From Octopus sinensis (lineage: Eukaryota), in contig NC_043005.1 of the NCBI RefSeq assembly GCF_006345805.1, positions 14,694,001-14,758,000 of the forward strand: a DNA stretch of 64,000 nucleotides, written 5' to 3'. Position 1 is the first letter of the stretch. Every line of letters begins with the position of its first letter. Position numbers and translations under genes: made by a program. The notes under the pieces were generated by a model that saw only the letters and a list, made by a program, of their open reading frames with translations, did no database searches and was not told the DNA's origin. Shown one piece after another: positions 7,141 to 58,114 of this stretch.

Positions 7141-7620
7141 TCAAATATGATATATATATATATATGTGTGTGGGTGTGAGTGTGTGTGTGTGTGTATGTG
7201 TGTGTGTGCAGGTTGTATCTCCTTCACATCATATAGTTGTTGTAAACGAACATCCCCGTCATACAAGCAGTGTCCCTTGTTTCCAATCTACCATGATTTA
7301 TTTCCACACCATCAGGAAATATTACATTCCTTGGAAGCAAGTGAGGGTTAGTGAGAGGAAGGGCATCCACCTAGAAATAATCTACCTCAACAAATTCCTT
7401 ACGACCCATACAAGCAGGTACAAAATGAATATTAAAATACTGATGATGATGATGATGATGAGGAGGAGGAGGAGGAGGATAAAGGTGAGAAATATAATTG
7501 GAAATGTGACAGAATCTCTATGTAGAGCATCGGAATGTAGTGTTTAGTTTTACATCTTTGGTTTGGAAAATGGATTTGGTGCCAGGAAGATTTATCTGTT
7601 GAAACAACAGCATGGATCAT

Positions 7621-7661
7621 TTAGAATTCATCCTGCTCCCTCTCTTTATTATTAATAACAT
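7621..7661 (-). CDS. Left gene exon 6 coding part (DVINNKEREQDEF*)
   Basis: Follows an 85-nt intron; acttttgccag| acceptor, phase 1, TAA at 7621-7623. Confidence 0.8.
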
Positions 7662-8513
7662 CTGGCAAAAGTCACACAAGCAAAATTACAGAACTATTTC
7701 ATTGTTTCTTATAAGATTGTATGAGAAATACTTTTTATCAACTTACCATTTATTGATTTACATTCATGGTAAGGAACTTGAGATAATTGATCAAGAAGAT
7801 AAATACAGGAATATATTTCAGAAGTATCCATATTCTTCACTTTGATCTAAATTAAAGTAACAAAAAGAAAAGCAACAAAATTACATCTCCAGGAATTACA
7901 TGGCTTTAGACAGGTGTCACATTTGTTCTGGACCCAGTAATTAAACAGATGGGGAACACCTCACTTATCCATCCACTCAGCAATTTTATCTCTTCTTCAA
8001 CTGAAGTGTTCTTTCAAATATTGATAACTTCATACAAGACCATCTTTACAGGGGCTCAGCTGCTCACATTCTTTACACATGATTTAGGAAACTCAAAACA
8101 ACATAAAGGAATTCTATTGGATCCACAGATGATGGCATCAGGGACAGAACCTGGTCTTGTCATCTTAATAAATTCAACTTGAAAATATTATTCCATTCTA
8201 AATCATAAATTCATGTAGAACTGAATGTTGAATCACAGTTAGTGATGGAGTCTGGTAGATATAACCTGTCTACATTTGGGTCTCTTACCTATTCTATATC
8301 CCCCATTTGTGTCTACATAAGTTGCCTAGACTGCCTCTTGGTATATCATCTCACCTTTGTATCAGTTCTCTATCACTCATCTCTCTATTATCCACCCACA
8401 CTCCACCACCAGCCTGTCTAACTAACAATAACAGTGAATCTCTCCTTTTCTCTGTACCCTGCAGTCATTGTAGGAATGTTACTGGACCTGTCTACCCTCT
8501 TGTCTCTCTCATA

Positions 8514-8555
<42 letters not shown>

Positions 8556-10640
8556 CTTACTCTCTTCCATTATGCCTCTACTATAAAGGGTGGCACTGGA
8601 ACTATCTGTACTCAATACTGCCTACAACCAGTCTTGTCCTCTCTTTCAATGCAGTCAACATCCTTTTTCTCTTTTCTTTTGCCACCCCTCAGTCCCATCT
8701 TTCTGTTTCTGCTATCATACACTTGGCCCCTTCCCCAAACACATCCTAGTTTGCTCCCACCATCACTCTACCTGCTACCCACCCTGTTTGTTGTCAAGAA
8801 TGTGACAGTCTCTCTAGTAGGGGACCATGCATGTGTGTGCCTGTGTAAATATTCACATTCTGCCCTGGGGTAAGCCAGAGACGACGATGATGACGTTTGT
8901 TGTCATTTCCCCATCAGAAAATTGTCCTGTAGCACTGCACATTCAAAGACAGGTGGAATAACATCTCCCTTCATAGAAAGCCAGGAAAGGGTTAGTGACA
9001 TAAAAAACACTGAGTTGAAAAGCATCTCCTTCATAATATGTATTCATCTAACCCATGCTAGAATAGAAAAAAGCAGTTGTAAAGCAAACAAATATATTCA
9101 TAGAATATTTGTTTATTTACAATGTTGTGTATATCAGAACTGAATTAAATCTAAATATTAAAGTATGATATTCTCTTTCATCCTTTTTTTTTTTTACTAT
9201 AATCTTGTTTCACCCAATGTGAGGTTTTAGAATATTTAAATATATAAGCAGGCATACGTACAGTAATAATCATTAATACAGTTGGTTATGTTAATAAATG
9301 TCTAAGGGGCTTATTTGGAAAAGCTGAGATTATTTATACAAATCTAAAAAACATGACAGGCAAGAAATATATTGAGGTTCAGTCAAGCAGGTATACTCAT
9401 TCTAAATGAAAAAGTAATAAAGGGTTTTACTTACATCTGTGCCCAGCTGAAATTTTCCTCTTGTCAATAACTTAATTTCTGACAGTGTATTCATTTCCGT
9501 AGGAAGGAGGAATGATTTATTTGCTGTTGTTGAATTTGGTTGAAATACTACCTTCTGTTTAACATAAGGGTCTAACCTTATATAAAACTCATATTTGCCA
9601 TATGCGTTATTACGTTGAACTTCAAAGGTCCAGTGTGTCCCTAGAAAGTAAGAGACAAAAAACGTCATCATCAGGCACAACAAAATTTCAAAATTATTAA
9701 ACATAAAATGATCATTGTCTTGTAAGGAGGTTGGATTTCAAATAAAATCATTAGAATATGATTGGAAAACATTTAGTTTTCCAATCATAGATTTATTACG
9801 TTTCTTTTCTTTTGTAATTTATTGAGATTATTTATTTCTATATCAAACAACAGAAGGAGAGGCTTTAAAAACTTTAAATAGTCACACATATGAGAAGGTA
9901 CCCAAAAGTAACTGGAAGCATTCTCTATGGGAAAAGCCCATTGTAGTCGAGGATTCTGAATTGACAAACTTTTTGATATGACTGGTGTGTCCTGGAGCTG
10001 CTGCCAACAAATTTTGAACAAGGAATTTCAAATGAAAAGAGTTGCAGCAAAATTTGTGCTTCACTTGTTCACAGAAGATCAGAAAGCAGTCTTGACTGAA
10101 TGTGTGACTCCTCTTACCCTGCCTCCCTATTCACCTGATCTTGCTCTTTGCAACTGTTTTTTTTTTTGTTCCTCTGAATAAAAAATGTCCTCAAAGGAAA
10201 ACATTTTGCAGATGTGGAAGAGAGGAAGTAAAAAACAAAACAAGCGTCAAAAGGCATCACTTTGCAAGAGTTCCAGGACTGCTTTGAACAGTGGTCTGAA
10301 TCGATGCATTGCTTCAAATGGAGAATACTTTGATGGCGATAGAAGTGTAAACATGTAAGACTAAGTGAATAAAATAATATAGCAAAATTCTGGTTTCTTT
10401 TGGGTGTTCTAGATCAGTGATTTTCAAGTCAGTTTAACTCTGAACCCTTTTCTGTCCCTAATGCTATTTTTAAATTACCCCAACCTTGTTATGATTCAAT
10501 GCATCTCTTCTTCTGATGTATATATATTAAAAATACGCAGCCATGTTCTGTGGCTAAGATGCTCAATTTGCAACCAGATCATTTAGTGTTTACTTCCAAT
10601 ATGTGGCACCTTGGAAAAGTGCCTACTACTATAAGTATAA

Positions 10641-10695
<55 letters not shown>

Positions 10696-13600
10696 CAAAT
10701 GAAAGACAGAAGATGGAATATACAAGAATTTTTTATTAGTCCCGACAATTGTTTCGGTACATCTAGCATTGATTCCTCTTGGGTGGGACACTCAACAACT
10801 GATTCTGGAGCATCTGGTGGTGCAGTTGTATCTCGTTGGGTGATGAATAAATAAAAACAACTCGTTAAAATAACTGTTCCACAACGTAACTTTCTGTTTT
10901 GTAGAGAGAAAAAAACAGCCAGACGGAGGAAAAAAATCTTCATATTTATATAGAAGATGAAAAATAAAATTGCAGAAGACAGAGAAACAAACATGTAATC
11001 CAGTGAGAGAAGTATTGAAAATAGCCATTAATAGATATGGATGTATAAACGTCCTCGGGCAAGCTGCATGGCATGAATACACAAGTGCATACAAGCATCA
11101 GCAAAAATGTGAGCATACACAAATGCTAGGTTTGGTGCAGTCCTGATCACAAAGTGAGTCAGTTATTTACTAGGTGTTTAGAAGAACGAGGAGGTTAAAA
11201 GTAAACTTAAGTCATCCATGCCTTAAAGTAAATTAAATTACATTGTGTTAACGGTTATTCAAAATTCCTTCTCACTGCATTATGCAAAAGTACATTTATA
11301 TGCATCTCAATAGTCGTTCAGAGATTCTATTAGGTATCTTCTCGTTAGTCCACAGAATATACAGGGATTCCTCGAAGCAGAGACAGCATCTCCTGGAAAT
11401 TACATCGTATGGTTTTGTATGTCTAACTATGGACCAATTAATGTTGTACTTCGTTTTACCCTCCTTCAGTCGCCATATAAAATCTGCCAAAGATGTCGAA
11501 TGTCTCTTATTGATTGATTTAAAGCTGGCAATATGGTTATGATGATGATTCTTAAATGAATCAGTGCCGTCTGCCCAATGTAATCATAGAGCCCTTCCCT
11601 TGTGTGCACGGTACATTTATATACAAGATTTGTACTCATACAGAGATTCATTAAAGGACATTTTGATTTATCTCTCCATGAGCATTTATCATATTTATTT
11701 GTATACAAGTCAGTCCCAACTCCATTTACCAGCGCTGTTATCGTGCTAGCTGTACCATGAGTATTTCTCCTACTACAAACTGGTCAAAGTTGATGACTAT
11801 CAATGTGGTTTACATCTCCTTGGTTGGTATTTAGATGCAAATGTTTGCTAGACCCAGTATGACAATATCGAACAGCTCTTCAGATGCTGTCAAACACTGC
11901 TAGGCACAATGCACTTCCAATTTTGTCTAGATTGTGTCATTCTTTTCCATCTCAACCGAAACTGTTTGACTGAATCATCTTCCCATTGTCACGGAGGCCC
12001 TCCAAATGGCCTTTTCTACACTCTGGGATATCACTTGGCAACTGCATGGTTCCACCTGTTGTCTGTGAACCTTGTGACATATCCAGCACAGTGGAACTTG
12101 TGCTTTCGATACCCTGCCATCACATTGTTCACTGAGCGCCATCCTCAAACTATTTCGAATTCTCTCAGTCATGTTCCTAGCATGGATCTTTCCATGGACC
12201 TTTGCACCATAGCCAATCAATATTTTATCTTCTTCATAGTAGCCCATGTCTCATTTGTGTGCCCTACATGGAGGGGGTGTTCTATTATTACAATTATCAC
12301 CATAACAATAATCAATGATTCATATGGAAACTTGCTTGCTCTCTCGACTGTTAGTGGCTGACATATTTTGATAGTCCGGTGACTATGATCCTTGTAAACG
12401 CCTTATAGGGGTGAGACAAGAGGCATATGCAGTGATAGTTTTTAAAATTTTCTTTATCACTCTTCTTGTGACGTAGAATGGTATTTGAAGATATTTTACC
12501 CTCCTTTAGAAAGTGGTTGAAATGTAGAATGAGGATTTTCCATAGTTCTTCACATTCACATCTTAAAAACTCTGTTGTGATGCCATTTTCCCAAGCGCTA
12601 TTTCTGTTTTCACCAGTTTGAGGGTTTTTCCAATGCCACTTATTGGAAGAGGTGGCACTTCTTCCTGCATTTGTTGCAGTGTGGAATCAAGCTTCAGCAA
12701 TGATTTAAGAACATTAGTGTAGAAGGTGTTATGTCCTCTCTCCTCCTCGGTCACCTTGAGCTCATCCTTATGCAACATACTTAATGTATGTGTGTTGTTC
12801 AACTGCCAGACCCTTTGGTTGTTCATTATAGGAAAATCCCTTCTTGATGGACGTATTGTGATGAAAACACAATATACTTCAGATCTAAGTAAAAAAAAAT
12901 CACCCCAGAATTCACTGTGAGGAAAACTAATACATATTTCCCTGATGTGGTGCATTGTCAGTGTCACATCCTCATTTCATTTCTAAAGCAAAATCAAACC
13001 GGCCAGTGTGGAACATATTGAGATAGTATATAAACTGTACACTGGTTTGCAATGGTATTGTGTAAGCTGAAAAAAAGAGAAACAAGAACACACAGCCTCT
13101 GTCTTTTCAGTCACACACAGACATTAAGTTATCTTGATAAATAGATATTGAGATATTAAATTAGAAGGACACTCAAAAGGGTAATATTTACACATTAACC
13201 TGTGCTTTAGTAAATTCTTCTAAATAGGGGAAAAAGACTTATGAATGGATTTTAATCAGTATGATTCATATAATTAAAAAAATAAAATCTCTCTCGGCTG
13301 GTTCGTCAGGCTGGAGTGGGCTATAGAAACTATGCTGATGAGGTCAAATAAACTGAAACATGACTGTAGTTATCTCATCCTTCAACATGGATCGTGTATT
13401 TCCTAATCTCATTAAATTTGGCTGATAATTTTTTTCAGTTTTGGGAAACAATCTCCCTGTTTCCTTTGAATTTTGCTTACACTGACCACAGAATTTTGCT
13501 TCCTTTCTAAAGATAAAAGACTAAATTTCAGTTGTGGCAAGAGTCACAGCACCCCCTGCAAGAATAGACTGACCAAACGTCTAAAAATAGTAGCGGTCTG

Positions 13601-16600
13601 AATGATATAGGAGAGTAGGCATTGATCGCAGGATGTCTTAGGTGTCATTTTGGCAGTTTGTTGGAATATCGTTTATTGGTTCATGGATAGTTTTTTGGAT
13701 CGTTAAGTTGTTGTTACCCTGCTTCGTTATATGCTTTATTATTACTCCACAATTATAATGTAAAAATATATCGTCATAACAATTGGCAATACAACAATTT
13801 CATTTAAGAATTTTTGCATATGGCATTCAATGTATTACCCCTAAATATATTATATTCAAATTCATGTAATTATTTCATTTGACTTATCTCTCATGAATCA
13901 CTTCTTTTTTTCATCTAATTCTATGAAATATATTGGCCAAAATTATCGGTAACTGTTTTCCTATCTGTAAAAACGTTTCTTATTTGGAATAACTTTACAG
14001 ATGTTTGTCTTTTCTTATCGCTGACAAAACAATTGTGAATTGAACCACTAAATGTAGAATAATGTGTCTTTCTTGGGGATTGAAAGGCAACAATAAGATT
14101 TGAACTCATAATATGAACCTTTCAAGTTGAATTCATTAATATTACAGTCACATGCTCCCTTGTGCATTTTGTAGGGTGTAGGGGTTGTACTAAGGAAAAC
14201 AATTCCTTGAGGAATTAAAGGAGAAGAAAAAAAACAGTAAAAGAACAAACAATAAAGAACAGTTCTGAGGCAAAATCTTACAATTTGATAATGTCATTTT
14301 GGCTCCTGGACATGGTGCTTCGCACAGAACACCATACGCTTCTTCAAGATCTTTATTTTCAATAACTATCTACAATAGAAGATCAGTGCAGGAATTTAAA
14401 ATAGTTTCATGATGATAATGATGATGGTGGTACTGATGGTGGTTGTAGTGGTGATGATGATGGTGGAGGTGATGAGGATGGTAGTGGTAGTGTTGGAAGT
14501 GGTGGTGGAGATGGTGGTAATGGTTGTGTTGGTGACGATGATGTTCATGATGAGAGTGATGATGATGATAATGATGATGGGGATGATAATGATGATGGTA
14601 ATGATGATCACGGTGACAATAAAACATTTGTAGTAAACGGCCAGTACAGACCAGTGTGGAATAGTGTCCTCACACACACACCCACACACATATTAAACCA
14701 GCTTCTTTCAGTTTCTGCCTCCGAAATCCACTCACAAAAAAATCTTGGTCAGCCAAGGGGTTTAATAGAAAATACTTGCCTAAGGTGCCACATTGAGAGA
14801 TGAATTGAAACCATATGAGCCCACTTTTTAAGCATACACCAATCCCTGTGCCTTTATACACACACACACACATACACACACCTGGCTCTCCATGCTTGTG
14901 AGATTAATGTGCAAGTGGCCGAGTATTCCACAGAATACATACTCTTAACATAGTTGTCAGGGAGATTCAGTGTGACACAGAATATGAAAAGGATGGTCCC
15001 TTTCAAACAGGCACTACTCAATTTTTGCCAACTGAGTAGACTGGAGCAATGTGAAATAAAGTGTCTTGCTCAAGGACTGAATGTGCCACCAGGAATCGAA
15101 CTCATAACCTTATGAGAGTGAGCTGAATATTCTAACCACTAGCCACCTGCCTTTACTAGACACACATACACAGGGAGAATGCAGAGCAAAATGTTATAAA
15201 CTGTTTCATGTTGAAAGACCTTTGGACAAACTTTACACCTAATTCCACAGCCATTCTCATATGCCCCTCCAGATCAAACTTTGAGAGATTAATCAATAAT
15301 AGACAGATATTTACACATGCTTAAGGAAATGATTAAATGGGATGTATAAACAAATTCTTTGGGGATCCTGAAATGGTTTAATGATATTTAGAATAAGAAA
15401 ACTACTAGATTCTTTCAAATAGATATCACTAACTACTATGCATCCATCGGCCATGTCCAATGAAATTGTAAGAAGGATTATACTGGGATGAAGCATTATT
15501 CACTATCTGTAATTGTAGCAAAAATAAAGTTGAACAGTATAAGGAAAATCTTTTGCAATTTTAAAATAGATCTGGATTTTCCATCTCTGTAGAGACAGAT
15601 CATAGTAAAGTAAAAAATTTTTTAGATATTACCCTTGACCTTATTTCTGAACTGCATCAACCATTTCACAAACCCAGTGACAACCTTAAGTACATAAGCC
15701 ACAACTCAAATCATCCAAAATGCATTATAAACTCTATAATTAAGGCAGTCTCAATTAGAATTTCTAAGCTTTTAACTAGGAAAAAATTTTTAAACAACAT
15801 GGGAGATATAACCTAACTTCAGCTGAAGTCGGTTACCAAGAAGAAATTAAATACATCCCAAATAGTAGTGATTCAGTCAAAGATAATAATGTTAACAATG
15901 GACAAATTATGATTCTGGTGACTCACAGGTGGTGTAGTTAGGACAAAGGACACAGAAACACCCTTAACCAACAGAAAGAAAGATAAGTGAACACACATAA
16001 AAGTAAGAGACAATCGAGTAACATTAATTCAAGTAAATTGACTGCTAAATCTTCACAACCTCCCAAATATGGTAGGTATAATGTTAATCACCAGCAAGAG
16101 GTGGAAGATAGGAAGCGTGGTGTGCAATAATCGCCCATATAAGATTTATTTTAATACAAGCTGACTAGCTCATGACAAAAGCATGAAGAGGAATAGTGAA
16201 GAATGTAGTAATTCTAAGAAACAGAGTGGTAGATTAAAGCAAGTAGTCTGATATAATGCACCATTGACATTGCAAATCACCACCAGTATCCTGAGACAAT
16301 TCTTCGTGGCCTTAGAAAAGCAGTTCCCACAACACAGCTTACACTGGTTATGCCTATGAAGTTCCTAAGGCAGCTGCAGGAGAAATATGTAGCCAAAGAT
16401 AAAATCTTTGTACTTGGCTTTTGTGACTTAGAGAAAGCCTTTGACAGGGTCCCCTGATCCCTCGTCAGATGGTCAATATGGAAACTAGGGATAGTTTCCA
16501 ATGAATGGCTGGTGAGAGCTGTACAAACCATGTACAGGGATGCTGTCAGTAAGGTGAGGGTTGGCAATGAGTACAGTGAAGATTTCAGGGTACAAGTAGA

Positions 16601-19600
16601 GGTTAACCAAAGATTGGTGCTCAGGCCCTCTTGTTCATCATAGTTCTCCAGGCAATAACAGAGGAAGATAGGCTGCCTCTGAGAGTTCCTCTATTCTGAT
16701 GACCTTGTTCTTATCGCTGAATCATTACCAGAACTAGAGAAGAGGTATGAAGCAAGGTCTAGAATTGAAGGGTCTTTGAGTTAACCTAGCAAAAACCAAA
16801 GCATTAGTAAGTAGGAAGGCAGACAAATTACAAATCCCTTCAGGTAGATGGACCTGCTTGATCTGTAGGAAAGAGATACGTAGAAACTCCATAATATGTT
16901 CTGAGTGTAAGTCATAGACATATAAGTGGTGCAAAAATATCAGAAGATGCATGGGAACAATAAATACAGAAAATTGACTCTATCAACTGCCAGGCGTGTA
17001 AGCTTCCATTATTTAGGTGACCAAGTTTGTAGCAGAGGTGGATGCTCCGAGAGCATAGCTGTGAGAATAAGATTAGGCAGGACAAAGTTCAGAGAGCTTC
17101 TACATCTGCTAGCAACAAAGACTTCTCTCTCAGATTGTATGATGCCTGTATGTGAATAGCCATGCTGCATGGCAGTGAAACATGGGCTGTGACAGTTGAG
17201 GACATGTGTTGGCTTGAAACAAATGAAGCCAGTATGCTTCACTGGATGTGCAACGCAAGTGTGCATGTTCAACAGAGTGTAAGCAACTTGAGGGAAATGT
17301 TGGGCATAAGAGGCACTGGATGTGGTGTGCAAGAGAGATGACTGTGATGTGATGTGTATGGATGAAGATAGCTGTGGAAAGAAGCAACAATCTCTAATTG
17401 TGGAGGGAAGCTACGGTAGAGGTGGATCCAGGAAGACATGGGATGAGGTGGTCTTCGAACTTTAGGCCTCACGGAGGCAGTGACTAGTGACAAGGACCTT
17501 TGGTGAAATGCTGTGCTTCAGAAGACCCATCAAGTCATGTGAAATTGTGATTATGGCCATTGCTGGTGTTGTGTAACTGGCACCTGTGCTGGTGACACAT
17601 AAAAATACATTTCAAGCATTGGGCCTCACCGAGGCAAGATGGCCAATGTCAGTGACACATAAAAAGCATCTTTCAAGTGTTGGGTCTCATAGAGGCAATG
17701 ATGAATGACGAAGACTCTTGACATTTTGCCAAGTGAAATCATAATTGTGTCAGATACTGGTGTCATGTGAATGACACCAGTATCTGACACAATACTGTTG
17801 ACATTAGGAAGGGCATCCAGCTATTGAAACCAAGCTAAATCAGACTGGAGTCTGGTGCAGCTTCTAGCTTGCCTGTTCTGGTCAAATCATCCAACTCATG
17901 CCACATTGGACAACGGATATTAAATGATGATGATGATATATATATGTATATGTATGGATGTATTTATGTATGTATTGATGATGATGATGATTATGGGACA
18001 GACAGAAGACAGATAGACATGGCCAGTCTATGGGGTTAGCCTGGGTTTCACATCCATAAAGCGCTTAGCTTTACAGTGTTTCTTCAGACCCTAAAATCCG
18101 TTGGCCTATGGCTTCTCTAGAAAATGGAGGAGGAAAAAGGACATCATTATTCAACAACCAGTGATTGTTGCTTTGACTGCTAATTAACTGACCATGTTGG
18201 CATGTAGATCCCAGGACACCAGCAAGAATTTCCTGAAGTGCATGCAGGGTCCAAAGACCACTATCCTAGATTTAAGGATATTCCCTATATCAAGGGAGTC
18301 CTTTTAATATTCTCATCTATTTGGCTATGCACAGTTTACAGTGCTTGGTCCCATTTATGTAATGACCTGGAGTTTCTAGGATCCTCCCTAATGTTATGTG
18401 TGGGGTCTTTCAGCCACCATGCATGACTGGCTAAGGATGAAGCATATCTCCTTTCTGGGATCCTGAAAGAGGATTTGTGGTTGGAGAAGTGCTGTTTGAA
18501 TGTGTTACTGAAACATCCGATATGTCTCCATGTTTAGGTGTTGGCAATAGTTTCTGTTGATGTTACTACCATTGTTGTTGGTATTTGTGTTGGCATCGTT
18601 GAAGCTGGTGTTGGTGTTTGTGCAGTTAATACTTGCTGCTGTTGTTATTATTATTTTTATTCCCAATCACACTTCCACCATCATCAGAAAAGAGGCTGTC
18701 TATATCAAGGCTTATATTAATTTTAGTGTTAGGGTTATAGGCAAGGCTTTGTCTATTTGGGTCAATGCTAGTACTACCACTGCTATGATTTATATTCCAT
18801 ATTAGGCAGAGATGAATGGGATAACTTTAGAGTAGATCTGCTGAAGATCAAACTATATTATGGTGATATGGAAAGTTAGAGTCTATGATGGCAAAGAAGG
18901 TTTTGGCTAAGCCCTTAAGCTTAAAGAAAAGTGGGGTGTATACCTGTTATGGAGATTATATCCCCCCACGTGATGAGTGGTATGTGGCTGTCATTATAAA
19001 TACTGTCAGTTAGTGTCAGTGTAGGAGAGAGTACAAAGTAGACAGTCATAGATAGTCGTGGCCTTTTCTAACTAACTATGCTGCTTTAATGCTCTGGACA
19101 TTACAACAGTCTGACAAAGGATTACAATAGTGGCGATGAGGAATTAACAAGCTCACAAAAGTATTTTGTGCAAATTTTATGGTATACAAAATCGTAAAAT
19201 CATGGTAAAGTTGTTGGCCAGTTTGCTTGAATTGCTAAAAGAGCAACAACAACTGAAAGAACAATAACAGCAGCAGCTACAACTGCAAGAGCAACAGCAA
19301 CAAATGCTGCAATTAATGAAGTTGTCTAAAAATGTTGAGAAGATGTTCCCGCTAGATTATGTTGCAAATTGAACAACGAAGTTTAAGAATGAACCAGACA
19401 AAGGAGTTACCTTCAAAGCATACTACAGAAGATACAAACAAATCTTCAATAAAGAGTGCAAAGTTTGGGACGACGATATGAAAATGCATCTTATCTTAAG
19501 AAAACTGGCAGCAGCAGTGCATTATAGTAATTATATACTCCCGAGAAACCCTTCTGGATACAAAAGACATACTGTGTAAAATTTCTAGTGAGAAAAGCTC

Positions 19601-20713
19601 ATTCTTCACTACATGCTGGAAATGTTTGAACCTAGAAAAGAATGAAGAGGACTACATCACATAGAATAACAGAGAATGTGAAAAGTTTAAACTGGACAAA
19701 TTAACGCCAGATATATTCAAGTGCCTGATATTTATTCAGGGACTAACTGCAGAGAAAGACACAGAAGTTACAACAAGAATTGTCACTAGGTTGGAACAAA
19801 ACCAAGCTGTAACCTTACAACAAGTGTCAGAAGAGTGTGAAAGAATAGTAAAAGAGAGCAAATTGAACATAAAGATTGCTCCCAAGTGAAACAAGTGCAA
19901 AATAGCCAGAATAGAAATCAAGTGTGTATTAAAGTACAGTTCAAACAGGACAAAAATCAAGGAACAAAGCCATGTTTGCATGTGACAGTCTACACTTGAG
20001 AAAAAACTGCCCATTTAAAAAGGTGAATGTTTCTGTTGAGGAAAAATTGGACACATACACTGTAAAACCAAGATGACAAAACATTGGAACAAAGCGAAAA
20101 GAATATGTCATCAAAGAAAAAAATAATGTAACAAAGAGGAAATATGTAAATGTGAAAATTGAAAATCTAAGAGTAAAAATGCAGTTAGACACTGAAAGAA
20201 GAATGAATGAAGAAACTTGGAAGTATATCAGTAAACTGAAATTAAGTAAATCTACAAAAGTAGCACATGGTGTTATGGGTAAAAGATTGTATTTTGTAAA
20301 TGAATTTGTGTGATGTGACATTTTGTGACCAAATGAAAATAGCAAAAATATATATGTTAAAAATTTCAGTTAATCTATTTGGCACAGAGTGGATGGAAGT
20401 ATTCAAATTGTGGAATGCACCTAAAAGTGTTTTGGGTGGAAATATTGTTGGTTCTGTCAAAAGTTCAAATGCAGCTGAGAGGTTGAAATGGAAAATAAAA
20501 GTTATTTCCAGAAGTTTTCTCAGTTAGAGTAAATAAAATTTATTTAAGCCATTCACTGTTCACCATTACACCAAATTCTTCTTGGAACCCCCCCCCCCAC
20601 AAATTATTGTGAAATTTAATGGGAACATACTGCATATAAAACATTAATTACCTGTTTCAGCTTATTTCTTTTAAAATACCATAATTCTTGATGAAACAGG
20701 TGTAATAAAATCT

Positions 20714-20745
<32 letters not shown>

Positions 20746-21971
20746 TTATTCTAATTTACCTGGAACTCCGTAGATGGACGAATGTCAATAGAATGTGGTC
20801 TTGTGTCGTTGACCAAGTCAATTTCAGTTGTGAAGCAGTTGTCCTCGTTTGGACATGTTATGTTTGTATATGTATCCCCGTTCAAAATAAGGTGAACTGA
20901 AGACTTATGTGCCTCAGTGTAACAAATTTCCACATTCCATTTTCTGGCCTGGGTATCTGACAAATAATTTGAAAAAATGAAAAATGTTTATCAATTATTT
21001 TCAAAACATCTTTAAAATATTTATACTGTGAATAGTTATTCTATTCTTCTCCTCTCTAGTAATTTATTACCAATTTCAGCCAGACTGTGGCCATGCTGGG
21101 GCACCACCCTAGTTATGCCAAAAAAACTAGTGTATAATATTGGAATTTTTTTTGAAAAAAACACCAAAATCTGAATAATTATTGTCAGTTGGAACTCTTC
21201 AAACATTTACTTTCAAGAAACTATGTTTTTTTTCTTTATATATGTTTTGTTCATGAATAAATCTGTTTGCCTTATTTTTAAAATCATTTTTCTCTACAAC
21301 AACCACTCTAGTTTCATGACAGAATGCCTGATGCTAATGCAGTGGAAAGAATTACTTTATCATTATGGCCAGTATTTCTCTGCTTTTCTCTTTTACATTT
21401 CAATATCCATTCCATCAATGCTAACATGAAAGAAGGAAAAACAGAGTAGAAGCCAGGAAGCTCACAACAAAACCATAAGCAATTTCTGAAATGGAACATC
21501 ATTATCATCATTTCAATATCTACCTTTCCCATGCTTGCATGGGTCAGGTGGAATTTTTTGAGGCAGATTTTCTACAACTGGATGCTATTCCTGTCACCAA
21601 CTCTCACCTTTTTCCATAAAACTGGTAACAAGGGACACTGCCTTTATGATGGTGATGCTTGTTACAGTCATCACGAGAGGTCACAACAAAGGCAGCAAAC
21701 ACACATGCACATAGCTTTTATGTTTTACTTGTTTCAGTCACTAGACTGTGGCCATGCTGGGGCACCACCTTGAAGAATTTCTAATCGAACGAATTAACCC
21801 AAATACTTTTATTTTCCTTTAAGCCTGCTACTTATTCTATTGATCTCTTTGCCAAACTGCTAAGTTATGGGGACACAAACACAGCAACACTGGTTGCCAA
21901 GCTTGTGGGGTGGGGGGAGACAAACAGACAAAAAGACACACACACACAGATACATACATATGTGTTTGTCA

Positions 21972-22017
<46 letters not shown>

Positions 22018-22226
22018 TCTCTTTACTCTTTTACTTGTTTCAGTCATTTGACTGCGGCCATGCTGGAGCACCGCCTTTAGTCGAGCAAATCGACCCTGGG
22101 ACTTATTCTTTGTAAGCCCAGTACTTATTCTATCGGTCTCTTTTGCCGAACCGCTAAGTGATGGGGACATAAACACACCAGCATCTGTTGTCAAACAATG
22201 CTAGGGGCACAAACACAGACACACAA

Positions 22227-22259
<33 letters not shown>

Positions 22260-24451
22260 CGACAGGCTTCTTTCAGTTTCCGTCTACCAAATCCACTCAC
22301 AAGGCGTTTGTCGGCCCGGGGCTATAGCAGAAGACACTTGCCCAAGATGCCAGGCAGTGGGACTGAACCCGGAACCATGTGGTTGGTTAGCAAGCTACTT
22401 ACCACACAGCCACTCCTGTGCCTATATATATATACTAGCAGAATTGCCCGGCGTTGCTCAGGGCTGAATTGCTTGAAAGTACTGTTAATGATTGCACTGA
22501 ATTATGATGATTATTCAGGCAAATATTGATATAAGCTTACGGTGGGAGATAAGGACTTAACGATCAAACGTGTGCCATTGCATTGTTTTGGGGGAACCAA
22601 ATTTCTGATGAGCATTATAGGGGCACCAACTTTAAATTTGAGAAAGTGTGGTGGTAGTCCGGGGTGCTCAAAGGAATTGAGTACCTCTATTGGATAGTTG
22701 ATGACGTCCTCTGGGTCAGGAGTTGTATCGATAGACTGATATACATAGACTTCCCCAGGAATGAGTTTTAGCATTTTATCATTAATATGGTGAACAGTTT
22801 TATTCCTCGGGGCCAGTATAGCCTTTTTGCCAATCCAATCCATATTCTGATAATTAGCTTGTAGATCTGGGAACACTGCATCTCTGAGATCAGAAGGCGT
22901 CTTAGCAATGGTACAAATGGAATCGATGGCAATATTACCATTTTCATCCCCTGGTATTTTGCCTTCGCCAAGTGCAAGGAGGGTGTGAGGAAATGCTGCT
23001 GATGTGATATTACGTCGCATATGAGCACACATATTGGTGTGAAGTTTGAGAGTTACTTCCATTTATTAAAAAAAATATGCATTAAAATGGAAAAAAATGA
23101 TGGTAAATTATTTGTAAAATCATAGACTCATCGTAGACGCGCGCTAATACCCAGGAGGACTCGATAGGAATCACGACTATAAGATACCCGGTTTTGGTTA
23201 AACTGCATCGCAAAATGTGGGAGTAGTTAGGAATCTAAATCGGAGTAGACAGACACACAACCTTTCTTTTATATATAAATATTTTCGTCCTAAAAAACTT
23301 TGTATGGATTGAATGGTTACCTCTATGGAAATATATACACGCACATTATACATACATGTGTGTATAGATGAATATATAAATACATTTAAATATCTATATA
23401 CTGTTTTGGGCGATCTTTCTGTTTCTTAGAGATAACTTTAGATCTTATTTTCGTCCTAAAAAACTTTGTATGGAGTGAATGGTTACCTCTATTGAAATAT
23501 ATACACACACGTTATACATACATGTGTGCATAGATGAATATATAAATATATTTATATATCTATATACACTTTTGGGCGATCTTTGTGCTACTTAGAGATA
23601 ACTTTAGATCTTATTTTCGTCCTAAATAACTTTGTATGGAGTGAATGGTTACGTCTATGGAAATATATACACACACATTATACATACATCTGTGTATAGA
23701 TGAATATATAAATACATTTAAATATCTATATACACTTTTGGGCGATATTTCTGCTACTTGGATATACTTTAGATCTTATATTCGTCCTAAAAAACTTTCC
23801 AGTCACACACTCACGCACACGCACACACACACACATGCACCCTCATACACACACACGCGCACACACACACACTCACACACACGCACGTTAGCTTACAATT
23901 TTATTTATATATTTGCGTGTCTATGTGTGTAAAGAGGAAGTGGGAGGCAGAGTGAAAGAGTCACTCACTTCAGAAAGTGAATTACTTTCATTTTATTCGT
24001 TGCACACTGTGTGTGTGCGTTTGCGTGTGCTGTATCCCACACTAAGAGAAGCATTTGACTCATACACCACAATGTGAGTTTTCTCTAAATTTTGCTTAAT
24101 TGGGGTTGAAATTTTAAAAAGTGGACCTGGCACGACCCGATGCATTCTACTCTTAAAAATGCTAGGTAAATTGTAATTGAAGAAATCCTATATTGTAGAT
24201 TTCTATAAGATACAAAGGGAGGCAGATAAAATCTGCCTTTTATAATAAGAGATATCTCTTATTATAAAAGGCAGATTTTATCTGCCTCCCTTTGTCTCTT
24301 ATAGAAATCTACAATATAGGATTTCTTCAATTACAATTTACCTAGCGGGTCGTGCCAGGTCAAGTTTTTCAAATTTCACCCCCAATTAAGCAAAATTTCG
24401 AGAAAACCCACATTGTGGTGTGTAAGTGAAGTGCTTTTCTTAGTGTGGGCT

Positions 24452-24516
<65 letters not shown>

Positions 24517-24942
24517 AGCGAAATGCTTCACTCATGCTATCACCCTAATTTCTCCTCCTTTCTCTTTGCAAGTGTGCAACGATTAAAGTGAAAGTATTTA
24601 TATAAAACGAGAGAAGTGTACATTAAACCACTACTCAAAAAAAAAAAACACAGCAAACAGAAACAAATAAATACATAACGATTTACTCCTCACACAATTT
24701 CTTCAATTAGAGTTTACCTATGATTTTTCAAAGTACTTCCATTCGGTCATGGCATACAAAATTTCTTTCAATTTCACCCCCATTTCAGAAAAAATTCAAG
24801 AAAACTAAATATTTTACCATTTCACTCACTTCAAAGCCTTTACTCTGCATATTACTCCCACTTCCTATTTACACACATAGACACGCAAATATATAAATAA
24901 AATTGTAAGCTAACGTGTGTGTGTGTGTGTGTGTGTGAGTGT

Positions 24943-25003
<61 letters not shown>

Positions 25004-28000
25004 TGTGTGACAGGGATGAGCCAGTCAGACTGGTCATCCTTTTTGCTAGAAGATCACCTATGGTCTTTATGCTACACCACTGGTTTTCAGTTCATATTAA
25101 TCAAATTCATATTCACAACAAGAAGGACTATTCATTATAATACATCAGTTCCACACATTTACCCTGGTTCCATTTCGGACAACTGCACAAACATTTGCCA
25201 TTTCACACATGTATGTAAACAAATTCCTTTCTTAAAAATTTCAATTCATTTTCTTTTTCAGTTCATACAAAGTTTTTCAGGACGAATATAAGATCTAAAG
25301 TATATCCAAGTAGCAGAAATATCGCCCAAAAGTGTATATAGATATTTAAATGTATTTATATATTCATCTATACACACATGTATGTATAATGTGTGTGTAT
25401 ATATTTCCATAGAGGTAACCATTCACTCCATACAAAGTTATTTAGGACGAATATAAGATCTAAAGTATATCCAAGTAGCAGAAATATCGCCCAAAAGTGT
25501 ATATAGATATTTAAATGTATTTATATATTCATCTATACACAGATGTATGTATAATGTGTGTGTATATATTTCCATAGACGTAACCATTCACTCCGCACAA
25601 AGTTTTTTAGGACGAAAATAAGATCTAAAGTTATCTCTAAGAAACAGAAAGATCGCCCAAAAGTGTATATAGATATTTAAATGTATTTATATATTCATCT
25701 ATGCACACATGTATGTATAACGTGTGTGTATATATTTCCATAGAGGTAACCATTCACTCCATACAAAGTTTTTAGGACGAAAATAAGATCTAAAGTTATC
25801 TCTAAGAAACAGAAAGATCGCCCAAAACAGTATATAGATATTTAAATGTATTTATATATTCATCTATACACACATGTATGTATAATGTGCGTGTATATAT
25901 TTCCATAGAGGTAACCATTCAATCCATACAAAGTTTTTTAGAACGAAAATCTTTATATATAAAAGAAAGGTTGTGTGTCTGTCTACTCCGATTTAGATTC
26001 CTAACTACTCCCACATTTTGCGATGCAGTTTAACCAAAACCGGGTATCTTATAGTCGTGATTCATATCGAGCCCTCCTGGGTATTAGCGCGCGTCTACGA
26101 TGAGTCTACGATTTTACAAATAATTTACCATCATTTTTTTCCATTTTAATGCATTTTTTTAAAATAAAGGGTAGTAACTCTCAAACTTCACACCAATATG
26201 CGTGCTCATATGCGACGTAATATCACATCAGCAGCATTTCCTCACACCCTCCTTGCACTTGGCGAAGGCAAAATACCAGGGGATGAAAATGGTAATATTG
26301 CCATCGATTCCATTTGTACCATTGTTAAGACGCCTTCTGATCTCAGAGATGCAGTGTTCCCAGATCTACAAGCTAATTATCAGAATATGGATTGGATTGG
26401 CAAAAAGGCTATACTGGCCCCGAGGAATAAAACTGTTCACCATATTAATGATAAAATGCTAAAACTCATTCCTGGGGAAGTCTATGTATATCAGTCTATC
26501 GATACAACTCCTGACCCAGAGGACGTCATCAACTATCCAATAGAGGTACTCAATTCCTTTGAGCACCCCGGACTACCACCACACTTTCTCAAACTTAAAG
26601 TTGGTGCCCCTATAATGCTCATCAGAAATTTGGTTCCCCCAAAACAATGCAATGGCACACGTTTGATCGTTAAGTCCTTATCTCCCACCGTACACTTATA
26701 TCAATATTTGCCTGAATAATCATCATAATTCAGTGCAATCATTAACAGTACTTTCAAACAATTCAGCCCCGAGCAACGCCGGGCAATTCTGCTAGTATAT
26801 AATAAAAATTTGTATGTTTATCAAGATTCCTAATGCGAAATCGTGTTGAAACAGATATTATTCTATTTCGAGACTATATATTTTCTCTTCATTTGTTTAT
26901 TATCGTTCTTATTTCAACAGACATGAGTTGAAATACAAATAGTAATAAATGAGTGAAAAACAAATATTTAGTATGTTTATTTGGGAATTTTTAAAAAATG
27001 ACCATCCTGAAATCTTTATATATAAAAGTAAGGTTGTGTGTCTGTCTCCTACGATTTAGATTCCTAACTACTCCCACATTTTGCGGTGCAGTTTAACCAA
27101 AACCGGGTATCTTATAGTCGTGATTCATATCGAGCCCTTCTGGGTATTAGCGCACGTCTACCATGAGTCTACGATTTAAAAAAAAAATTTACCATCAATT
27201 TTCCCCCATTTTTAATGCATTTTTTTTCTATTATATAAGGGAAGTAACTCTCTAAAAATGTATTATTAAATCTCAGAACATAAAAGCTACAGTAACACCC
27301 CCCTTTGTGGTTAGCCATATTGAGATGGCTATTATACTTTACATCTCTAAAAATGCTTATATAGTTATTTCCCTTACAAACCCGAGCAACGCCGGGCGAT
27401 ACTGCTAGTACAATATAAATATATTCAGATATATATATACTCACAAGGCACTGGTCAGCCTGAAGCTATAGGTGCCACATAGTGAGACTGAACCTGGAAC
27501 CATATGGTTGGGAAGCAAGCTTCTTACTACACAGACACACCTGTGCATATAAATATGTGTGTGTAGAAATTTATAATAAATTATTAATTATAATTGAGGG
27601 TACACAAAGTACCAGTGTTACTAGAAATAAGAGTTGAAAAATACTAAATCTCTGAGAGAGATTCATGTAGTAGCAGCATGATAAAATGATAGTATGTTGT
27701 CAACTTAATGTGACAGTCCCATGAAAGGGAAGAATGCTACTGTTGTGTAGCCCTAGGAAATACTGTTTCCTGTTGGGCTTGACACATTTCCTGTTCTGTC
27801 ATCATAGAACCTCATAAAGAATGGTGCAAACAAGCTCCCTTTAAATGGGAAAACCAAGTTCAAATGACTGCAGTACGGGAATTCTGCAATAGCATTAACC
27901 CTTTAGTGTTTAAACCAGCCAAATCCGGCCCAATATATTCTACATGTTTTATATTCAAACTGGCGATATCTAGCCTCTCACTCCTAACCTACAATGTCAT

Positions 28001-28637
28001 TCTGAAAATAAACAATCACATCATTGAAACCTCAAAGCTATAAGATAATGCATGATTAATTCAAAACAATTTGAGTGAAAAAGTATTACATTTAACAGAG
28101 TATTCTGAACACTAAAGGGTTAAACTTTGAGCTACCATATTTCTGTTGAAATGCACTGCCATTGTCTATTAATTTTGGAAGTTGTGAAGAATTCATTTAA
28201 ATAACTTTGTCATTATGAAGCAAATGTTTGGAACATGACATGAGATTTTGATGGCAGGTTTTACTTCAGATGAATTTAAAACAGAGAATGTCTATGATTC
28301 AACCAGGAGTGACGTTACTATGTGGTTTGGGATCAAAAAGATTAAACCAAGTGATAGATAAGGTCAACCACCCAAGAACAGGAACAGAAATGAACTCTAC
28401 AACAGGCTACCACAGAATCCCCAACTATCCAGTTCCACACTTTAGATTTTAGCTGACCTGAGACTGTTGTACAAGACCCTAATCCAGGGTACCATACAGT
28501 AGAAACTGACCTGAAAACAAACCTCTTCATTATACACAGCCATACATAATGATTGCAGAAATAAATAAATAAGAGAACTTACAAAAGAAATGAGGTAAAA
28601 CAAAGAATAAAATACTGCAATAGGAAAGAACCAGCAT
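7621..28637 (-). CDS. Six-exon gene, left paralog; 228-aa predicted secretory/ER-luminal protein with two beta-rich repeats and C-terminal QDEF
   Basis: Exons of 55+197+88+206+100+41 = 687 nt. All introns are GT-AG with phases 1,0,1,0,1. Translation: MLVLSYCSILFFVLPHFFYTQARKWNVEICYTEAHKSSVHLILNGDTYTNITCPNEDNCFTTEIDLVNDTRPHSIDIRPSTEFQIVIENKDLEEAYGVLCEAPCPGAKMTLSNWTHWTFEVQRNNAYGKYEFYIRLDPYVKQKVVFQPNSTTANKSFLLPTEMNTLSEIKLLTRGKFQLGTDIKVKNMDTSEIYSCIYLLDQLSQVPYHECKSINDVINNKEREQDEF*. No transcript evidence is available to me. Confidence 0.85.
7747..7846 (-). CDS. Left gene exon 5 (IKVKNMDTSEIYSCIYLLDQLSQVPYHECKSIN)
   Basis: tttaatttag| acceptor, g|gtaagt donor, 100 nt, phase 0 to 1. Confidence 0.88.
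9435..9640 (-). CDS. Left gene exon 4 (first part of repeat domain 2)
   Basis: ttactttctag| acceptor, gat|gtaagt donor, 206 nt, phase 1 to 0. Confidence 0.9.
9889..10413 (+). mobile_element. Internally deleted mariner/Tc1 relic (mirror 58342-58867 -)
   Basis: PPYSPDLA motif, RVAAKFV, C-terminal CIASNGEYFDG, degenerate TIRs (cccaaaagtaactggaa / ttctggtttcttttggg). Confidence 0.85.
11290..11730 (-). mobile_element. Penelope-like GIY-YIG endonuclease relic (mirror ~57050-57490 +)
   Basis: KCPL..LVYKCTV..YIGQT; FIWRLKE..YNINWSIV..RRCCLCFEES. Confidence 0.8.
11960..12230 (-). mobile_element. Old RTE-like LINE 3' relic (mirror ~56520-56830 +)
   Basis: Degenerate CAGYVTRFTDNRW..YPR..KRPFGGP. Confidence 0.6.
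14282..14369 (-). CDS. Left gene exon 3 (IVIENKDLEEAYGVLCEAPCPGAKMTLSN)
   Basis: cttctattgtag| acceptor, t|gtaaga donor. Phase 0 to 1 exactly bridges exons 2 and 4, and the N-terminal part resembles exon 5. Confidence 0.8.
14409..14630. repeat. Degenerate trinucleotide (GAT/GGT) tract (mirror ~54165-54360)
   Basis: Low-complexity tract, ~40 nt upstream of the exon 3 acceptor. Confidence 0.9.
15150..16150 (+). mobile_element. Penelope-like RT relic (mirror ~52400-53560 -, which retains an extra ~245 bp)
   Basis: FLDITLDL..LHQPFHKPSDNLKYISHNSNHPKCII; degenerate LYWDEA (YRDDG-type) motif. Confidence 0.7.
16270..17935 (+). mobile_element. RTE LINE RT and 3' end, degenerate; only the 5' part is mirrored at ~51690-52270 (-)
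   Basis: FCDLEKAFDRVP, LVRAVQTMYRDAVSKVRVG, FLYSDDLVLIAES, RIRLGRTKFRELL; (ATG)n tail. Confidence 0.88.
18190..18640 (-). mobile_element. Penelope-like GIY-YIG relic (left arm only)
   Basis: NTFKQHFSNHKSSFR..SHAWWLKD..NGTKHCKLC. Confidence 0.65.
18937..20521 (+). mobile_element. 3'-truncated Ty3/gypsy LTR retrotransposon (5' LTR ~18937-19126, PBS 19131-19141, degenerate gag and protease)
   Basis: TGTA...TACA LTR ends, TGGCGATGAGG PBS, Q-rich gag start, degenerate CCHC knuckle, MQLDT protease-like motif, multiple stops. Confidence 0.8.
20760..20956 (-). CDS. Left gene exon 2 (first part of repeat domain 1)
   Basis: ttatttgtcag| acceptor, cag|gtaaat donor, 197 nt open, phase 1 to 0. Confidence 0.88.
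22022..22420 (-). mobile_element. tRNA-derived SINE (family also at ~29020-29418 and ~35110-35510)
   Basis: Head caggagtggctgtgtggtaag...ggttcagtcccact, internal CA/TA microsatellite. I recognise it as an abundant Octopus-type SINE. Confidence 0.85.
22435..23281 (-). mobile_element. Non-autonomous Helitron (~847 bp) carrying a PIF1-type helicase fragment
   Basis: 3' hairpin plus CTAG before T. ORF has LAPRN, INDKML, SID, YPIEVLNS, GLPPH, KVGAPIMLIRNL, CNGTRL. The 5' TC is mutated. Confidence 0.92.
23281..23800. repeat. ~166-bp satellite, 3 units plus partial
   Basis: Unit starts at 23281, 23447, 23613 and 23778. Confidence 0.92.
24161..24346. repeat. Zero-spacer palindrome, 93-bp arms, 1 mismatch, centre 24253/24254
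   Basis: Arms compared base by base; imperfect symmetry continues outward to ~24010 and ~24470. Confidence 0.95.
25270..25949. repeat. ~166-bp satellite, 4 units, inverted relative to 23281-23800
   Basis: Repeating aaagttttttaggacgaaaataagatctaaag... Confidence 0.92.
25950..26795 (+). mobile_element. Non-autonomous Helitron (846 bp) carrying a PIF1-type helicase fragment
   Basis: a|TC at 25950, cccgagcaacgccggg hairpin, CTAG|t at 26792-26795. Near-identical to the copy at 22435-23281. Confidence 0.93.
27013..27408 (+). mobile_element. Short non-autonomous Helitron (396 bp)
   Basis: a|TCTTTATATATAAAAG ... hairpin ... CTAG|t. Confidence 0.9.
28583..28637 (-). CDS. Left gene exon 1 (signal peptide)
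   Basis: gccATG context, MLVLSYCSILFFVLPHFF+T, donor T|gtaagt (phase 1). Confidence 0.8.
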
Positions 28638-32129: not shown

Positions 32130-32500
32130 CCGTGGACTGAAGATGTGAAATTTCCGAAGCCTCTCCCCAACCCACCTTTCGCGAGCGCGCATTTTTTTCA
32201 TCATAGTCGTTTAGAGCAAGTTGTTTTACACCTATTACGCTATTTTTGTTTTTGTTTTTGTGCCCGGGTCAGACGCTTTCGGAAATTCCCGATGTAAATT
32301 TTCCGAGGCCTCTCCCCCACCCCCTTTCGCGTGCGCGTTTTTTTTCATATTCGTTCAGAAAGTTGTTTTACATATTACACTATTAGCAGACGCTTTCGGA
32401 ACTTCCCGATGTTTTTCCGAGGCCTCTTCCCCTTTCGCGTGCGCGCATTTTTTTTTCATATTCGTTCAGAGGAAGTTGTTTTACACCTATTACACACATT
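32130..32500 (+). repeat. Three degenerate ~115-150 bp direct repeats
   Basis: Recurring ccgaggcctct...ctttcgcgtgcgcg...gttgttttacac. Confidence 0.6.
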
Positions 32501-34636: not shown

Positions 34637-34741
<105 letters not shown>

Positions 34742-35585: not shown

Positions 35586-35729
<144 letters not shown>

Positions 35730-35734
35730 ATGTG

Positions 35735-36740: not shown

Positions 36741-36749
36741 ATTATATCT

Positions 36750-39864: not shown

Positions 39865-39907
<43 letters not shown>

Positions 39908-42801: not shown

Positions 42802-42842
<41 letters not shown>

Positions 42843-58075: not shown

Positions 58076-58114
<39 letters not shown>

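Follow-up and report, generated by a model that had tools for sequence, protein, structure and literature searches.

Gene conversion and unhomogenised coding islands in a palindromic gene pair of Octopus sinensis

Results and Discussion

A palindromic gene pair

The DNA analysed here, referred to throughout as the window, is a stretch of 64,000 nucleotides from Octopus sinensis chromosome CM016867.1 (assembly GCA_006345805.1), to which it is 100% identical at ∼14.694–14.758 Mb. Self-comparison shows that it consists mostly of one large inverted duplication, whose arms carry two copies of an uncharacterised gene arranged head to head: copy A (LOC118764737) on the minus strand, with exons 1–5 at 28637..7747, and copy B (LOC118764774) on the plus strand, at 44873..60990. 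We conclude that intrachromosomal gene conversion passes sequence between the two arms, that it did not cease when O. sinensis and O. vulgaris separated, and that it keeps the 5′ flank, introns 2–4 and the conserved parts of the exons 98–99.5% identical, with a divergence of 0.5–2% in introns 2–4. Patches within several exons have not been homogenised and keep an older divergence of 13–22%, silent sites included. The complete reading that we favour, and regard as probable, is that of a palindromic gene pair in which conversion homogenises the scaffold and regulatory flank of the genes, coding islands are kept apart, and positive selection accounts for part of the differences between the islands.

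The high-identity block of arm A occupies positions 7145..31840 of the window and pairs in inverted orientation with 61582–43167; its partner, arm B, lies at 43167..61582, and a spacer of about 11 kb (31841..43166) separates the two. Long collinear BLAST blocks between the arms are 95.3–97.5% identical, with just 83% identity in one segment around exon 2, and in non-coding 500-bp bins the fixed differences between A and B amount to 0–2.7%. Against this background the mismatch density peaks at 14–20% in exons 2, 4 and 5, compared with 2.6% over all aligned arm sequence, and the introns adjoining these exons are nearly identical between the two copies.

The unhomogenised patches comprise the 3′ two-thirds of exon 2, the 5′ half of exon 4 and the 3′ half of exon 5, and much of exons 6–8 shows the same behaviour. 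In copy A, exon 2 (20760..20956, minus strand, 197 nt, flanked by AG and GT splice sites) contains a divergence island at ∼20887–20770 that continues for ∼70 nt into intron 2, with 8 mismatches in the first 70 intron bases. Exon 4 (9435..9640, minus strand, 206 nt) has its island at ∼9628–9524, its 3′ third being homogenised, and exon 5 (7747..7846, minus strand, 100 nt) has a shorter one at ∼7794–7753.

Gene conversion between the arms

Evidence for conversion comes from aligned sites scored by their pattern across four sequences, copies A and B in each of the two species. Differences between A and B that are common to both species vary widely in density along the gene, from 0.45% in intron 3 and 0.83% in intron 4 to 2.1% in intron 2, 4.1% in intron 1 and 7.5% in intron 5; in exon 2 and exons 4–8 they reach 10.6–22%, and in exon 3 they reach 3.4%. 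A different pattern, in which A equals B within each species and the species differ, is found at 25 ‘concerted’ sites that are clustered in introns 2 and 3; the exons contain only one such site, in exon 1. Twelve clustered concerted sites define a conversion tract at 15659..16170 in intron 2 that post-dates the species split, and a second group lies at 10742..12156 in intron 3. In intron 3, moreover, A and B differ by 0.9% in O. sinensis, compared with 1.2% between orthologues and 2.0% between A and B in O. vulgaris. Both the clustering of the concerted sites and this A–B divergence, lower than that between orthologues, show that arm-to-arm conversion took place after the two species had separated. 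The divergence pattern of intron 3 further suggests that it was homogenised very recently in O. sinensis only. In this intron (9641–14281) the O. vulgaris copies have 31 and 33 lineage-specific single changes, about four times as many as the O. sinensis copies, with 7 and 8.

Differences within the exons are older than the species, 163 of the 165 informative A/B differences being common to both. This pattern bears on the concern that the supposed paralogs are alleles or haplotigs misjoined as an inverted repeat, a concern fed by the presence in the O. sinensis assembly of a third, 99.3% identical copy of arm A, 850 kb away, that may itself be a haplotig. An independent O. vulgaris assembly (GCA_951406725.2) nevertheless has the same head-to-head order, and 163 exon sites follow the orthology pattern compared with one at which A equals B within species; misassembly is refuted by these data and we give it practically no credence.

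The age of the patches is indicated by their silent sites. Exon 4 carries 26 fixed A/B differences in 206 nt, compared with 31 in 5654 flanking intron sites (p = 1.5e-23). Silent divergence is 0.17 in exon 4 and 0.23 in exon 5, compared with 0.005–0.013 in the flanking introns, a 10–30-fold excess (Poisson p = 2e-7 to 3e-4), and silent changes are found in the same places as the replacement patches (p = 0.02). The high silent divergence of exons 4 and 5, the extension of the exon 2 island into intron 2 and the co-location of silent with replacement changes all imply that the patches are old, rather than young and fast-evolving. The contrast between exons and introns is therefore due mainly to the homogenisation of introns by conversion, and not to rapid evolution of the exons after a recent duplication.

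A preliminary description of this DNA, which correctly recognised the paralogs, had taken that second course: the duplication would be recent, the introns would show its true age, and strong positive selection would have driven the substitutions in the exons. The difference between the exon patches, at 14–20%, and the arms as a whole, at 2.6%, is what such a history would produce, as is the preponderance of replacement over silent codons discussed below. It does not account for silent sites in exons 4 and 5 that are 10–30 times more divergent than the adjoining introns, nor for an intron divergence that ranges from 0.45% to 7.5% along one gene, nor for concerted sites that record conversion after the species split.

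As a neutral yardstick for these comparisons, the distal part of intron 5 (below position 7145) was considered and rejected. It differs by 12–25% between A and B and is made up of a dispersed repeat family in which any copy resembles the others to about the same degree.

Codon-based tests of selection

Codon models were fitted to a 400-codon alignment of exons 1–8, part of which lies outside the window, made up of copies A and B of O. sinensis, both O. vulgaris orthologues, the third O. sinensis A copy and, as outgroup, the nearest O. bimaculoides gene. The transmembrane helix and tail are encoded by exons 9 and 10, downstream of the exons analysed.

The codon counts on which the preliminary description had relied were reproduced in full. 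Codons with replacement and with silent-only differences number 1/0 in exon 1, 24/2 in exon 2, 3/1 in exon 3, 17/4 in exon 4, 11/1 in exon 5 and 3/0 in a supposed exon 6, making 59/8; as shown below, the last of these is not an exon, and the five real exons in the window contribute 56 replacement and 8 silent codons. The statement that many codons had changed more than once also stands, 20 in-window codons carrying at least two substitutions. What the counts mean is another matter. Because non-synonymous sites outnumber synonymous sites by ∼3.8 to 1, a ratio of 56:8 is near the neutral expectation (binomial p = 0.06), and the expectation that the ratio (ω) of non-synonymous (dN) to synonymous (dS) divergence would prove well above 1 is not borne out in the window. 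Pairwise maximum likelihood gives ω of 1.11–1.20 for exons 1–5 (p = 0.55–0.74 for ω = 1), and a branch model gives 1.39 for the post-duplication stem branches over the same exons (p = 0.31).

The exons differ considerably among themselves. Exon 2 has a pairwise maximum likelihood ω of 3.0–3.9 (p = 0.016–0.036), rising to 5.6 (p = 0.008) when the stem branches are considered for this exon alone, and it is the only one of the in-window exons to stand out, with nominal significance. Exons 4 and 5 together give 0.78; taken separately, exon 4 has dS of 0.16–0.17 and ω of ∼0.8, and exon 5 has dS of 0.23 and ω of ∼0.9. For exons 6–8, outside the window, the value is again higher, at 1.9–2.4 (p = 0.009–0.044), and for exons 1–8 together it is 1.5–1.6 (p = 0.04–0.06). 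A Nei–Gojobori comparison of A and B over the whole ectodomain agrees with this, giving dN of 0.175, dS of 0.111 and ω of 1.5–1.6.

Tests that use the phylogeny point in the same direction. On a five-taxon tree the two post-duplication stem branches have ω of 1.81 (p = 0.011), compared with 0.36 for the branches since the species split. Site models, run as M2a against M1a, favour the class of positively selected sites, with twice the log-likelihood difference equal to 26.2, or to 10.6 (p = 0.005) when two extra rate classes are added to allow for regional depth. The 174 exon differences are distributed as 65, 69 and 40 over codon positions 1, 2 and 3 (p = 0.014). We conclude that the excess of amino acid changes is real and that it constitutes modest evidence of positive selection. 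The earlier preference for selection over neutral decay is thus upheld in part, since decay is rejected and some selection is indicated by exon 2, exons 6–8, the stem branches and the site model; the description of a strong excess was overstated, and the in-window ω is not significantly above 1.

These results also complete the case regarding a recent duplication with strongly selected exons. The 59 replacement to 8 silent codons, the ω of 3–5.6 in exon 2, the greater change at codon positions 1 and 2 than at position 3 and the support for M2a are all in its favour. Set against them are the in-window ω of 1.1–1.4, which is not significant, and the behaviour of the orthologues, which show no continuing acceleration. 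Between species dN is 0.005 and 0.010 for the two genes, below the intron divergence of 0.013–0.017, and dS (0.016–0.024) is about equal to it; the orthologues differ at only 11 and 13 of 400 codons. Together with the silent-site and conversion evidence, this makes a recent duplication an improbable explanation.

Relaxed constraint or pseudogenisation, with one or both copies decaying neutrally and an ω of ∼1 signifying lost function, would fit the values of ∼1 for exons 3–5 and the ω of 0.60 between the B orthologues, which is not different from 1. It would also fit two defects in O. sinensis, a 1-nt deletion in exon 2 of copy B and a 1-nt insertion in exon 7 of copy A, and the truncated or chimeric models that RefSeq and the O. 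vulgaris annotation give for copy B. Many features of the genes nevertheless speak against decay. There are no stop codons across the 174 differences, codon position 3 has changed least, and the A orthologues have an ω of 0.23, significantly below 1 (p = 0.02). All 11 Cys and all 6 Trp residues of the mature ectodomain are unchanged between A and B, as previously claimed. Exon lengths are kept in all O. vulgaris copies and in the third O. sinensis copy, and AG and GT splice sites are present in every copy over the exon 1–8 alignment. The indels occur only in the O. sinensis assembly, and that in exon 2 of copy B falls in a homopolymer A-run, for which an assembly error is plausible. Finally, neutral decay offers no reason for the unconverted islands to fall on coding patches, and we consider it quite unlikely.

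When changes are polarised with the outgroup, 20 are derived in A and 19 in B, 38 being unresolved. This symmetry counts against the idea that the divergent patches were pasted in by ectopic conversion from more distant family members, in the manner of the exon segment switching known in some toxin families. The sharp patch edges inside exons are suggestive of pasting, and exon 7 of copy B shares 83% identity with P0023, encoded by a paralog on another chromosome, but only 55% with copy A. The similarity in exon 7 is equally explained if copy B has kept an ancestral state close to the family consensus and copy A has changed. For the other exons the closest other family member is only 32–65% identical, below the identity of A to B, and no donor was found. 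Replacement of segments from elsewhere is accordingly very improbable.

Exon structure of the two copies

Exon 1 of copy A (28583..28637, minus strand, 55 nt) provides the start codon and signal peptide; it runs from ATG to TTTT, with GTAAGT following across the splice boundary, and a phase-1 intron comes after it. Its product is identical to the first 18 residues of P0003 (XP_036361597.1) and it has a single replacement relative to copy B. P0003 matches copy A exactly over exons 1, 2, 4 and 5. Exon 3 (14282..14369, minus strand, 88 nt, IVIENKDLEEAYGVLCEAPCPGAKMTLSN) was placed by tblastn with P0002 and P0003 and by splice-site mapping. In copy B, on the plus strand, the corresponding exons lie at 44873..44927 (exon 1), 48108..48303 (exon 2), 54397..54484 (exon 3), 59116..59321 (exon 4, which differs by 1 nt from its O. 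vulgaris orthologue) and 60891..60990 (exon 5, identical to its O. vulgaris orthologue).

An alternative position for exon 3 of copy A, at 14206–14119 on the minus strand, was suggested by the O. vulgaris model P0001 and proved false according to the family alignment, the real exon being at 14369–14282. The false exon would have implied a lost splice acceptor and a changed Cys in copy A. P0001, the O. vulgaris annotation of copy B, is itself a chimera: a repeated element in the spacer (35910–36056, plus strand) supplies its first exon, the model includes a spurious exon from intron 3, and exons 1–3 are omitted.

The segment at 7621..7661 on the minus strand, read in the preliminary description as a sixth exon ending in a conserved EREQDEF tail, belongs to intron 5; neither the annotated proteins nor those of the family use it as an exon. 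In RefSeq and family proteins exon 5 is joined to a sequence beginning DSMWRVELTS, and the three differences in the 41 nt at 7661–7621 correspond to the intron 5 background. P0003, P0019, P0002 and P0027 run from exon 5 into D[SA][MV]WRVELTS, and the motif D-x-x-W-x-[VI]-E-L-T follows exon 5 in P0003, P0019 and P0027 of O. sinensis, P0002 and P0018 of O. vulgaris and every family member. The true exon 6 lies outside the window, ∼200 bp past the left edge for copy A (L005 38835–39067) and ∼400 bp past the right edge for copy B.

Exon lengths are kept throughout apart from the two single-base indels of O. sinensis, a 3-nt excess in exon 8 of its copy A, and an outgroup exon 8 that is 12 nt longer. 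Exon 2 of copy B has 196 nt, one A being missing from an A-run ∼14–17 nt into the exon. This deletion (48108–48125) breaks the frame if the standard acceptor is used, an AG 8 nt downstream would restore it, and the O. vulgaris exon has 197 nt. The extra base in exon 7 of copy A (L005 47089–47183, beyond the window) likewise breaks the frame in the O. sinensis assembly. Both indels are confined to that assembly: the frame is intact in the O. vulgaris orthologues and in the other A copy of O. sinensis. Either the assembly is wrong at these points or pseudogenisation has occurred in this species only, and the indels are probably the reason why the RefSeq models of copy B are truncated and that of copy A is shortened.

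Protein family and predicted structure

Sequence comparisons place copies A and B in an Octopus-restricted family of uncharacterised type I, single-pass membrane glycoproteins. An exhaustive HMMER (phmmer) search with the O. vulgaris protein P0001 returned 14 proteins at E ≤1e-10, query included, all of them from Octopus, and 17 at E ≤0.001; a word-indexed search had found one O. vulgaris protein. The members come from O. sinensis, O. vulgaris and O. bimaculoides and are annotated as ‘uncharacterized’, and the sole non-Octopus entry is a weak bacterial match. Full-length members have ∼450–610 residues, comprising a signal peptide, an ectodomain marked by Cys and Trp residues, one transmembrane helix and a tail rich in Ser, Thr and Pro. 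Searches of Pfam, of PDB sequences and of PDB profiles gave no match to the family, and a literature search for the gene symbols found no paper mentioning these loci.

A reasonably confident AlphaFold2 model was built from a 20-sequence family alignment headed by P0019, with a predicted local distance difference test score of 79 and a predicted template modelling score of 0.70. Apart from the signal and transmembrane helices (residues 2–19 and 440–468) it is all-β, and the ectodomain of ∼420 residues is predicted to form four modules, among which hhalign detected no similarity. Residues Cys100, Cys104, Trp117, Cys196, Cys211, Trp219, Cys307 and Cys320 are nearly invariant in the 20-sequence alignment.

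Positions that vary between A and B match those that are variable in the family as a whole (p = 9e-5), and they form clusters along the sequence (p = 2e-4). They do not spare the β-strands, the cores of which had been thought unchanged: mapped on to the model, 29 of 116 strand residues vary in the window compared with 26 of 80 non-strand residues (p = 0.26), and over the whole ectodomain the figures are 71 of 223 and 52 of 158 (p = 0.83). Neither is there any bias between the two faces of the strands, a proxy for surface exposure rather than a three-dimensional measure of it, and such proxies do not support the expectation that the variable sites cluster on a surface.

Repeats and neighbouring sequence

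The window has a G+C content of 33–45% and numerous microsatellites and transposon remnants. Its outermost ends, 423–1091 and 63332–64000, are 98.7% identical in inverted orientation and lie beyond a stretch of low similarity, which implies that the homogenised palindrome is patchy and reaches past both ends of the window. A dispersed repeat of ∼800 bp, with copies 73–83% identical, occurs at 1170–1749, 6260–7135, 17001–17528, 46479–47399, 61683–62547 and 63153–63318. One copy on each side adjoins the outer edge of the high-identity arm block, at 7145 and 61582, and these two may mark the limit of the homogenised region.

The spacer is rich in dispersed repeats of ∼400 bp and contains smaller internal inverted repeats. 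The ∼400-bp element resembles a short interspersed nuclear element or a miniature inverted-repeat transposable element; its copies are 80–95% identical, occur in both orientations and are concentrated in the spacer, those identified being at 27013–27424, 36750–37148, 37352–37740, 37739–38130, 39240–39647 and 47593–47992. Intron 1 of copy A only contains an open reading frame with a Pif1 helicase 2B domain (22514–23062, minus strand; Pfam E = 3.7e-14, Helitron-like), bracketed by inverted 1.37-kb repeats that are 98% identical (22429–23798 and 25434–26801) and contain tandem units of 165–166 bp. Intron 1 measures 7.6 kb in copy A and 3.2 kb in copy B on account of the Helitron-like insertion in A.

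The third copy of the whole arm A region (LOC118764738, encoding P0019) lies ∼850 kb away on the same chromosome, at CM016867.1 15,571,252–15,634,676, and is 99.2–99.3% identical to arm A. Its exons 1–8 have no nucleotide differences from copy A in aligned codons, and it is either a very recent segmental duplicate or a haplotype that was not collapsed in the assembly. In O. bimaculoides the nearest gene, LOC106880512 (CM046612.1 43,891,578–43,915,024), is much more compact, with introns of 0.16–1.2 kb compared with 1.3–8 kb. Exons 5 and 6 were not detectable in it and no inverted partner was found within 10 kb upstream. The palindrome may have formed after the O. bimaculoides lineage branched off or, alternatively, LOC106880512 may be a degenerate relative.

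Interpretation

In the scheme that we prefer, the amino acid differences would have arisen after the duplication and before the two species separated, partly under positive selection that is clearest in exon 2 and exons 6–8. Both gene lineages would have changed about equally, and since the split both copies would have been under purifying or relaxed selection. The islands would have survived because conversions that erased protein differences were removed by selection, the two proteins having to stay different; strong local mismatch may also block conversion tracts. A variable ectodomain with invariant Cys and Trp residues would suit two putative receptors or adhesion molecules at the cell surface that differ in what they bind.

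Several points weigh against this scheme. Strong mismatch alone could preserve the islands by blocking conversion, with no part played by selection. The in-window ω is not significantly greater than 1, and selection for amino acid change is not demonstrated there. The codon models were run with our own scripts rather than PAML or HyPhy, and they assume a single tree for all sites, which conversion violates and for which the control with extra rate classes compensates only in part. The O. bimaculoides outgroup gene has no exons 5 and 6 and may itself be a paralog. Should the frameshifts in exon 2 of copy B and exon 7 of copy A prove genuine, decay of one or both copies in O. sinensis would be possible. 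The variable sites, moreover, are not enriched in loops or at polar positions (p = 0.10 for polar compared with hydrophobic), and the absence of such enrichment is not what diversifying selection limited to the surface predicts.

A palindromic pair with protected coding islands could also be given a more specific biological meaning. As a speculative and rather unlikely extension, the pair may be a cephalopod counterpart of paired or diversified surface recognition receptors. The promoter-proximal region and structural scaffold would then be common to both genes and be kept identical by conversion within the palindrome, and selection would separate the binding patches of the ectodomains to give two specificities, for example in immune, self/non-self or chemotactile recognition. 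Were this so, the Octopus-only family would constitute a previously unrecognised receptor repertoire built on a new β-sandwich ectodomain.

The locus carries a more general lesson, that positive selection can be greatly overestimated when the divergence of exons is set against the identity of introns in paralogs that exchange sequence. It provides a clean invertebrate example of coding islands that resist conversion inside a palindrome, and it points to the residues that would make the two proteins functionally different. A membrane protein family found only in Octopus, with no known domain and with evidence of episodic adaptive change, is also a candidate for a role in lineage-specific cephalopod biology.

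Comparison with known systems

At the level of the fold, the nearest likeness is to PLAT/LH2 and C2-type β-sandwiches. Foldseek aligns the model locally with the PLAT/LH2 domain of lipases, the C-terminal domain of lipoprotein and pancreatic lipase, over 115–155 columns with a probability of 0.99–1.0 and a root-mean-square deviation of 4.6–5.6 Å. The E-values, however, are 0.04–0.1, the template modelling scores are 0.17–0.20 when normalised to full lengths, and the likeness has no counterpart in Pfam or PDB sequence matches.

Accelerated exons and conserved introns are a feature of venom toxin families such as the phospholipases A2 of crotaline snakes, the three-finger toxins and the conotoxins. 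The octopus genes are like them in that the exons diverge several-fold more than the introns and dN is about equal to or above dS. They differ in that the product is a membrane protein of ∼550 residues rather than a small secreted toxin, in that the orthologues show no continuing acceleration, and in that the low divergence of the introns is explained by demonstrable conversion.

The large inverted repeats separated by a spacer, and kept highly identical by intrachromosomal conversion, recall the ampliconic palindromes of the primate Y chromosome, in which conversion likewise passes from arm to arm (PMC3403216, PMC2997549). The arms of the primate Y palindromes are usually more than 99.9% identical, coding sequence included, whereas the coding patches of the octopus pair escape homogenisation, and the octopus locus is not known to be sex-linked.

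The closest parallel is with paralogs in which selection opposes conversion. A peak of divergence in an exon, with homogenised flanks, is the mark predicted for this process (Innan 2003; Teshima & Innan 2008; PMC3924837), and it has been described for human RHCE and RHD (Innan 2003) and for exon 5 of the red and green opsins (Teshima & Innan 2008; reviewed by Fawcett & Innan 2011, PMC3924837). The octopus genes share with these pairs the combination of close paralogs, ongoing conversion, near-identical introns and a short divergent coding region with linked silent sites. They differ in that the copies are inverted and exchange sequence from arm to arm, in having not one island but several, distributed over seven exons or more, and in belonging to a family that is uncharacterised and found only in Octopus. 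The locus is thus a further instance of a phenomenon already known, here in an Octopus-restricted gene family that had not been characterised.

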